A stretch of DNA of 63,357 nt, counting the filler, from Olpidium bornovanus S191 (taxonomy: Eukaryota; Fungi; Olpidiomycota): assembly GCA_017911155.1 (NCBI GenBank). It is 27 parts of 27 records of this genome, joined end to end, with 100 filler letters (N's around TTAATTAATTAA, not from the genome) between each part and the next. Parts side by side here need not be neighbours in the genome. Positions count along the whole stretch, not along the records: positions 33,084 to 35,042 come from JAEFCI010001572.1; 26 more parts are not named here. One strand, written 5' to 3'. A program made the translations under genes and the position numbers. Positions 32,976 to 35,042 of this stretch are shown in pieces (the first letter of the stretch is position 1; every line of letters begins with the position of its first letter). The notes under the pieces were generated by a model. It saw only the letters and a program-made list of their open reading frames with translations. It did not search any database and was not told the DNA's origin.

Positions 32976-33102
32976 AAACCATGNNNNNNNNNNNNNNNNN
33001 NNNNNNNNNNNNNNNNNNNNNNNNNNNTTAATTAATTAANNNNNNNNNNNNNNNNNNNNNNNNNNNNNNNNNNNNNNNNNNNNAAAAAAAAAAACCCCCG
33101 GT

Positions 33103-33136
<34 letters not shown>

Positions 33137-33542
33137 GTTTTTCCACGGCCTGCGGGCGTCGTTTCGCGGGACGCCTATTGCCCCTACGAATGCCCGTGAG
33201 ATAGCAGGGCGTGGTGAGATAGATGCGCGCAGACGCCTTTGTGAGCCGCCCCTCGGGGCGGGCGCGTCCCGCGTTTTTTTTTTGTCTGTGACACGCTGGT
33301 TACTTCGCGAGATGCAACGCGGGTACTGCGCGCGCGCGTCGGAAGAGAAGCGGGGGGGGTGGAAGGGCGACGACGGGTCACGTGACGGCCGAAGCGGCCG
33401 GAAAAAAAAAAAAAAAAAAACAAAAAAAAAAAAAAAACCCCCCCAAAACGGGGGGGGGAACTTCCCGGCCTCTCCAGATTCCCCCGCCCGGCTCTTTCTC
33501 CGCCCGCGGACAGGGGCGAAGTAAGGCGCCCGGCGGCGGCAA

Positions 33543-35042
33543 ATGTCGGCTTCCCTCACCAGCGGGTCGCCCTCCGCCGCGAAGCGGGCCCCGCCGAACG
33601 TCTGCTTCCTCGTCGACTGCTCCTCCGGCCCTCCGGCGGCGGCGGCGGCGGCCGAGGAACCGCCGCGGCGCCCGCGTCGGAACCGCGTCCCCGAGCGCGC
33701 GCGCCGCCTCCGGCAGGCCGCGTTCAAAATCCTGCTTTACTTCCACCACTACGTCGACAGCAGGTTCCGCTGGGACTACCGGCTGGTGGACCTGCGCGGC
33801 GGCGCGACGAGGTTTGAAGAAGCCCCTCCCCCGCCGACGGGCGGCGGCCGCAAGGCCGCCTCCGGGTTCCGGGAGTTCGGCAAGGACGAATTCGAACGCT
33901 TCGCCGCCGATCTGGAACGCGGAGTAGTCCGAGCGGCCGCTGCGGACGCGCCCGCGCGCGCGAGATCTCCGGAGCGCTCGGAAGCCGCCCAGCCGCCGCT
34001 CGTGACGCTCAAGATTGAGCTCAAGAAAGCGCTGGCAGACTTCAAATGGATGCAGGTGCGTGAAAAAATGTCCGTCGGCGTGGCCGGAACGCGTCTCGAG
34101 TTGCGACGAAAAATCCGCATCAGGACGGTAAACTGTCGTCTTGCCCCGGGCCAGGTGGACTTCAGCGAAGTCAGTTCGCCCGTCACGTCGAGGACTCGAA
34201 ACCCCGCTCGAGGAGCGCAGTCGGACGCCGTGGGACGCCCGCCGACGACGGCGAAGAACTTCATTTACCTGTTCACGGACCGGCCGCGGTCGCACGCAAG
34301 TCTCCTCGAACACATCCAAAGCGCCGGACTCTCCCCCTCGCGATCGACCGGCGGGCCCGGCGAAATTTCGCCAGAGCAGACGACGGCGATCCTGGACCAT
34401 ATCCGCGATGCTTGGATAGAAACGGACATTCCGGACGCGTACGCCAGGGATAGGATGGGCATATGCTGGGTCGACACATCAGTCAGACAGCAGGAAGCTG
34501 GAGAACCTGACGCTGTTTACCACATGTTTGCCGCCATCATGTCTGCTTTCGGAGGCAAGCTTGTGCACCTGGACGACATCCTCCACGGGGAACGCCTGAT
34601 GCCTTCCTCGGCAATACTTCACTATGCTCGGAGCAGAGTACTACTTCCGGATCGTCGGTTGGCGGACTTGCAGCAGGGCAGGTTATCGTTTACCCCAGAG
34701 CGAACGGCCGTATCCCCAGCCAGTATGTGGATTGTCAGGCTCGTCGCAGCTTCTGACATCTGCGCGAACTGTGAGTGGGATGCCTTCTACTTGATTGTAC
34801 CGCGCTGGAGTCATAGATAATTTTGAGGCTTATGTCCTATTGTTCTAAACACCGGCAACTGTAGCAAATGCTCAGATATGTCCGGCCAAGGTGCAACGCC
34901 TGGTAAAGTCCGTAACGCAGAATGTTTCCGCCGTTCGCCGCCCTTCGAAGCAGGGCGTTAACAACTTGATTATCCACCCAGACAGCCGGCATCCGACCTA
35001 TCCTCGCCGAGAACGTTCGCCCTCAAGCTGAATGGTGCCATG
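33543..35042 (+). CDS. TICRR: Treslin/TICRR-like protein, N-terminal (CIT/vWA-like) domain; 3' partial
   Basis: At least seven colinear blocks match recalled human Treslin: NVCFLVDCSSG/KVMLLLDTAGG, RLRQAAFKILLYF/RVRRAALRLLTYL, FREFGKDEFERFAADLE/FRELGSRSWEDFEEELE, LKKALADFKW/LMETLLDYQW, NFIYLFTDRPRS/NAVFLLAPCPHS, ICWVDTS/FYWVDTT and FGGKLV/GGGTVL. Probable 99-nt intron at 34056-34154. Confidence 0.78.

Follow-up and report, generated by a model that had tools for sequence, protein, structure and literature searches.

We found that a piece of the Olpidium bornovanus S191 genome encodes an N-terminal vWA (CIT/Treslin_N) domain, and we put at about 90% the probability that the piece is the 5′ portion of the one gene of the Treslin/TICRR-Sld3 family in this organism. 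The piece studied (33084-35042; JAEFCI010001572.1) belongs to a 63,357-nt stretch of DNA, here called the window, along which all positions are counted. The gene lies on the plus strand, starting with an ATG at 33543 and running up to the piece edge at 35042, and an in-frame TAA is found at 33522-33524, 18 nt upstream of that ATG. The open frame from the ATG comprises 425 codons when read through the in-frame first intron (34056-34154), which separates exon 1 (33543-34055) from exon 2 (34155-34770). “CIT” is the name given to the N-terminal vWA domain of Treslin (Sanchez-Pulido 2010; Ferreira 2022, PMC8807876). Homology to Treslin_N-type proteins, a predicted vWA fold, expression with splicing, and the absence of the domain from Saccharomyces cerevisiae Sld3 are each established by the evidence laid out below.

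Homology and predicted fold of the N-terminal domain

The only meaningful Pfam match of the encoded protein was to Treslin_N (PF21854) over residues 52-170 (21.1 bits, E 2.4e-4). Searching the open frame with phmmer against 1.84 billion representative proteins returned 17 matches at E<=1e-3, with E values from 1.4e-15 for the best down to 8e-4. One of these, P0004 (2840 aa), was rejected as a repeat-driven false match, its 31 weak alignments all falling on query residues 270-340 and involving a UBA_ARI1 repeat, and with the cluster members P0018 and P0019 added the set came to 18 relatives. Thirteen of the 18 matched Pfam Treslin_N and/or Sld3_STD at E<=0.01. Treslin_N was matched at this level by 11 relatives, seven of which exceeded its cut-off with 27.3-37.0 bits (P0002, P0003, P0007, P0012, P0015, P0016, and P0017), and six relatives exceeded the Sld3_STD cut-off (P0003, P0008, P0010, P0012, P0014, and P0017). 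The remaining five had no recorded Pfam match; P0001, P0006, P0009, and P0013 were scanned and blank, and the cluster members were unscanned.

Identity between the query and its relatives was 19-33%. With full-length relatives, every match started at residue 3-17 in query and target alike, and the match consisted of two blocks on either side of the retained intron 1. Aligning the query with 16 N-terminal regions of fungal relatives (alignment A2, 17 rows) revealed about ten colinear conserved blocks, at open-frame residues 8-25, 61-84, 109-125, 151-170, and 211-214, and then at 233-256, 283-312, 325-346, 353-370, and 395-401. An earlier sequence-only reading of this DNA had described seven or more colinear motif blocks in comparison with human Treslin; the blocks counted here are those found against the 16 fungal relatives.

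For scoring, a profile made of the 16 relatives alone, excluding the query, was applied to the exons one by one. At profile positions 1-146, exon 1 reached 110.6 bits; exon 2 followed in colinear order with 91.1 bits at positions 150-311. The maximum among 1000 shuffles of each exon was 3.6 bits, and the read-through of intron 1 gave no match to this profile. These results confirmed that homology to Treslin_N-type relatives is far beyond chance, and with it the Treslin N-terminal domain that the sequence-only reading had placed at 33543-35042. A protein-language search likewise had a chordate Treslin_N cluster as its top match (0.91). A word-index protein search found no match for the 425-aa frame and, for the full-length alignment A1 (11 full-length early-fungal proteins), only the first sequence of A1 itself; these blanks are not read as absence, because low-complexity words probably crowd the candidate list.

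Exon 1 (171 codons) encodes the first half of the domain, including an N-terminal GSPSAAKR motif followed by the predicted strands beta1 (NVCFLVD) and beta2 (RWDYRLV). The second half lies in exon 2 (205 codons plus 1 nt), which encodes the strands NFIYLFT and MGICWVD and an AFGG motif, as placed by A2 and the predicted model, and which probably also holds the start of the next domain. The motif G-S-P-S-A-x-x-R-x-P-P-N-V (33564-33617, residues 8-25) is common to the query and most of the fungal relatives, just before beta1 and outside the Pfam Treslin_N match. It contains an S-P site, and the conserved G-S-P-S-A-x-x-R portion might be a site of regulatory phosphorylation particular to the lineage.

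We modelled the frame that keeps intron 1, running through exon 2 (33543-34769), with AlphaFold2 (AF2). The single-sequence model was useless, with a predicted local distance difference test (pLDDT) score of 35, and supplying alignment A2 gave a pLDDT of 70.7 and a predicted template modelling score (pTM) of 0.75. This model showed the strand-helix alternation, in the order of a Rossmann-like domain, with low confidence at the retained intron 1 (pLDDT <50) and at the low-complexity inserts. Its alternating beta-alpha Rossmann-like fold can be superposed on solved vWA domains, as in other members of the vWA fold superfamily; the informative structural comparisons were those by VIA-align and in the ESM Atlas. 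In the atlas the top structural match came from plants, a cluster with Treslin_N, Treslin_M, and Treslin_STD and a template modelling (TM) score of 0.54 by query over 277 residues, and vWA and Ku clusters ranked after it. On the strength of this model, the encoded domain is predicted to have a vWA, Ku-like fold, and the vWA/Ku-like N-terminal region put forward in the sequence-only reading is supported both by the model and by those atlas clusters. The metal-ion-dependent adhesion site (MIDAS) motif D-x-S-x-S is absent after strand beta1, where the query reads D25-C-S-S-G; the relatives have D-I-A-A-P, D-S-K, D-T-G-A-C, and so on at this position in A2, and the motif is not conserved. The piece holds at most the first strand of a Ku-like beta-barrel, at residues ~395-409 (pLDDT <50).

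A fold shared by several families raises the question of whether the gene encodes some other vWA plus Ku-like protein, such as MTBP/Sld7, Ku70/Ku80, or the integrator subunits INTS6/13/14, rather than a member of the Treslin/Sld3 family. We consider this highly improbable, given that the relatives are sequence-specific (the 11 Treslin_N matches, seven above the cut-off, with Sld3_STD in the same chain in six), that the Ku_N, VWA, and integrator families gave nothing for the query at E<=10, and that the top structural match was the plant Treslin cluster.

Several observations nevertheless tell against assigning the piece to the Treslin/TICRR-Sld3 family. The Treslin_N score of 21.1 bits is below the gathering cut-off of 26.5, exon 1 alone scored 17.0 bits, and exon 2 alone had no Pfam match. 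The sequences aligned were fungal relatives, with the Pfam model as the other term of comparison, and no animal or plant Treslin sequence was among them. The fold model was built on a shallow alignment of 17 rows, and a Foldseek search of the model against the PDB found nothing at E<=0.001, only weak vWA and Ku rows. In addition, the Cdc45-binding core Sld3_STD, the MTBP/Sld7-binding beta-barrel (M domain), and the CDK (cyclin-dependent kinase) sites, with the phosphorylated region for TopBP1/Dpb11 contact, would lie past 35042, outside the piece. Raw RNA runs X23 and X20, of each of which ~6% was sampled, gave 0 reads on the stretch, a blank that carries no weight either way. Of the checks suggested in the sequence-only reading, the Treslin_N profile matched at residues 52-170, short of its cut-off, and structure prediction and comparison gave a pTM of 0.75 and placed the plant Treslin cluster first in the atlas, with no PDB match at E<=0.001 by Foldseek. 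The N-terminal domain profile, compared with PDB sequences, likewise found no solved relative.

Early-diverging fungal relatives and proposed loss of the domain

All 14 named relatives are early-diverging fungi (Chytridiomycota, Zoopagomycota, and Mucoromycota), with 0 from Dikarya. Seven are chytrids (Rhizophlyctis, Synchytrium, Polychytrium, Cladochytrium, Gaertneriomyces, Geranomyces, and Fimicolochytrium), two belong to Zoopagomycota in the broad sense (Dimargaris and Basidiobolus), and five to Mucoromycota (Jimgerdemannia, Benniella, Mortierella, Zychaea, and Bifiguratus). The phmmer search of 1.84 billion proteins recovered no Dikarya, animal, or plant protein at E<=1e-3; since the animal and plant blank reflects divergence rather than absence, the Dikarya blank is merely suggestive.

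Direct comparison with yeast was made using the full-length profile A1, which matched full-length S. cerevisiae Sld3 (668 aa, PDB chain 9tgm_8, available from recent cryo-EM structures) at E 1.6e-14. This alignment was limited to profile positions 565-1116 against Sld3 residues 96-653, and the N-terminal profile A2 had no match to the Sld3 chains in the PDB at E<=10. Because A1 aligns to Sld3 by the core only, the early-fungal proteins are Sld3 orthologues with ~500 extra N-terminal positions. S. cerevisiae Sld3 has no counterpart of the N-terminal domain encoded here, and the statement of the sequence-only reading that yeast Sld3 lacks it was borne out for this species. Among early-diverging fungal entries, many that are annotated as “hypothetical protein” are clearly orthologous to Sld3 and have Treslin_N as an additional domain.

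The sequence-only reading had also proposed a secondary loss of the domain in later fungi, which is supported and fits the list of relatives. This evolutionary inference is not new, since loss of the N-terminal vWA domain in yeast evolution has already been published (PMC8807876). The same paper describes the domain as “not present in fungi” (PMC8807876), and our literature search found no paper noting a vWA domain in early-diverging fungi. The early-diverging fungal proteins are themselves already public, and many chytrid and zygomycete entries contain the architecture without comment, one example being a Synchytrium entry with precomputed Treslin_N and Sld3_STD matches.

Maximum-likelihood analysis of the domain paired the query with the 248-aa metagenome fragment P0001 (support 96/95) and placed it outside a chytrid clade that was itself supported (97/99); this tree had no outgroup, and its backbone was unresolved. 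P0001 (31% identity; JGI metagenome sample 3300071325, 932-nt contig) was also the closest relative among 15 billion public proteins. The version of the gene found in the query lineage is otherwise without a representative among annotated proteins, and an exact-product look-up of the open frame found no contig. We suggest, tentatively and with more doubt than conviction, that the host might be a deep lineage without an annotated relative for this gene and that the domain might have been lost at or after the origin of Dikarya, contrary to “not present in fungi”.

If the host were instead a non-fungal eukaryote, such as an amoebozoan or a lineage related to the fungi, the domain would be uninformative on loss within fungi. 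The position in the tree, grouped with a metagenome protein only and outside the chytrid clade, would agree with such a host, as would the unresolved backbone lacking an outgroup and the identity of only 19-33% to every relative; GC-rich exons and 79-99-nt introns also occur in several protist groups. Against it, 14 of the 14 named relatives are fungi, the motif GSPSA..R..PNV at the extreme N-terminus is common to the query and to chytrid, Basidiobolus, and other fungal sequences, and animal and plant Treslins fell short of E<=1e-3. On balance we regard a non-fungal host as unlikely.

Contamination of the assembly by an animal, a plant, or another organism was weighed as well, as the piece is a short, 2-kb contig. 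However, the stretch was present in 19 runs from seven studies under one organism label with a few strain-level differences, and small parts of it occur in soil metagenomes, which disfavours a one-off contaminant; animal and plant proteins were absent from the matches at E<=1e-3, and the named relatives are early-diverging fungi throughout. Taken together, contamination appears very improbable.

Models of origin firing rest on yeast Sld3-Sld7 and animal Treslin-MTBP, and the N-terminal vWA domain has been deemed specific to “higher eukaryotes”. The gene described here and the 14 named early-diverging fungal proteins show that fungi outside Dikarya have proteins in which a vWA domain is joined to an Sld3 core, an occurrence that narrows the timing of the loss of the domain. 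Early-diverging fungi, being simple, haploid, and in part tractable, offer a setting for testing what the vWA domain does. The advance is an incremental one, as the loss had already been deduced and database entries already exist, and one further, rather divergent member is added here. With the same domain in at least 14 early-diverging fungi, the gene is a sound but fairly ordinary find.

Transcript structure, upstream region, and strain variation

We compared public sequencing runs with 33462-35042 and derived the exon-intron structure from transcript contigs of runs X1 and X8. Three introns were found, every one with GT..AG ends. The X1 transcript contig is 3416 nt long, reaches 33475 at its 5′ end, and extends 2021 nt past the piece edge at 35042. 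From these transcript contigs, the GT..AG joints, and the 2021-nt overrun, it follows that the gene is expressed and spliced and is much longer than the part on the piece.

Downstream of exon 2 lie intron 2 (34771-34864, 94 nt), exon 3 (34865-34902, 38 nt), and intron 3 (34903-34981, 79 nt), with the joints of both introns present in the X1 and X8 contigs and the frame open in phase through exon 3. Exon 4 (34982-35042) is cut by the piece edge; its frame is open to the last base, and the X1 contig continues beyond it. GC content is 0.55-0.72 across the exons of this GC-rich piece and lower in introns 2 and 3, with 0.45 in intron 2 against 0.60 in the adjoining exon 2.

Intron 1 (99 nt) is in frame and stop-free, and it is sometimes retained. 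The X1 contig (depth 53) and one X8 contig retain it, and another X8 contig has it spliced out; its position is a gap in all relatives in A2, an exact match. Retention would lengthen a vWA-domain loop that is already disordered by 33 residues. It could represent alternative splicing or simply unspliced RNA, and in the former case the vWA loop could exist in two isoforms.

Upstream of the start codon, the 5′ untranslated region extends over at least 33475-33542, this minimum being set by the X1 contig. The 5′ flank before it (33084-33474) is probably the promoter region and has a single CACGTG at 33379. Between the GC-rich stretches of 33084-33460 are unusually long homopolymers of A11, T32 (33104-33135), T10, G8, A19 and A16 (33402-33437), C7, and G9, which could be promoter or nucleosome-excluding tracts, or reflect assembly trouble at the contig end. 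Promoter motif scans of this region (MCB, SCB, E2F, and E-box) gave isolated matches only, from which no inference was drawn, and an Rfam scan of the piece gave no family match.

Contigs from other runs under the same organism label differed from the piece at 34016, 34121, 34186, and 34694. Two of these differences are synonymous, one lies within intron 1, and one changes Thr to Lys (34186); they look like strain-level variation.

Comparison with known origin-firing factors

The Treslin/TICRR-Sld3 factor is responsible for loading Cdc45 onto licensed double hexamers of MCM. The vWA domain encoded here, which like those of Ku70/Ku80 has no conserved MIDAS and is followed on the piece by a few residues of the next domain, most likely adjoins a Ku-like beta-barrel, as in human Treslin (PMC8807876). 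The domain may aid pairing with an MTBP/Sld7 partner, in the way that the vWA domains of Ku70/Ku80 add to their dimer interface, and together with the rest of the protein would support efficient origin firing. Judging by how the relatives are organized, the downstream core would be the part that binds Cdc45 and MCM and is responsive to CDK.

Among known proteins, the closest in sequence are the early-diverging fungal proteins that combine Treslin_N with Sld3_STD, such as those of Synchytrium microbalum (XP_031022277.1), Jimgerdemannia flammicorona (RUP43852.1), Bifiguratus adelaidae (OZJ06039.1), and Geranomyces variabilis (KAJ3177427.1), with which the query is colinear from residue 1. It differs from them in its low identity (19-33%) and its placement outside the chytrid clade, and its own Sld3 core would lie beyond the piece. 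S. cerevisiae Sld3 (PDB 9tgm, 9rhi, 3wi3, and 3x37) is orthologous to the core of these fungal relatives, with just ~95 residues ahead of the matched core and no vWA counterpart.

Ku70/Ku80 resemble the query in having a vWA domain likewise devoid of a conserved MIDAS motif, but they have a different cellular role, and Ku_N gave no match to the query at E<=10. Compared with Treslin/TICRR of animals and plants, the query has a weak, below-cut-off similarity to Pfam Treslin_N and carries long low-complexity inserts at residues ~30-50, 90-105, and 215-232. A further difference from animal and plant Treslin is an extra GSPSA..R motif, conserved between the query and its fungal relatives, that precedes strand beta1 at the N-terminus.
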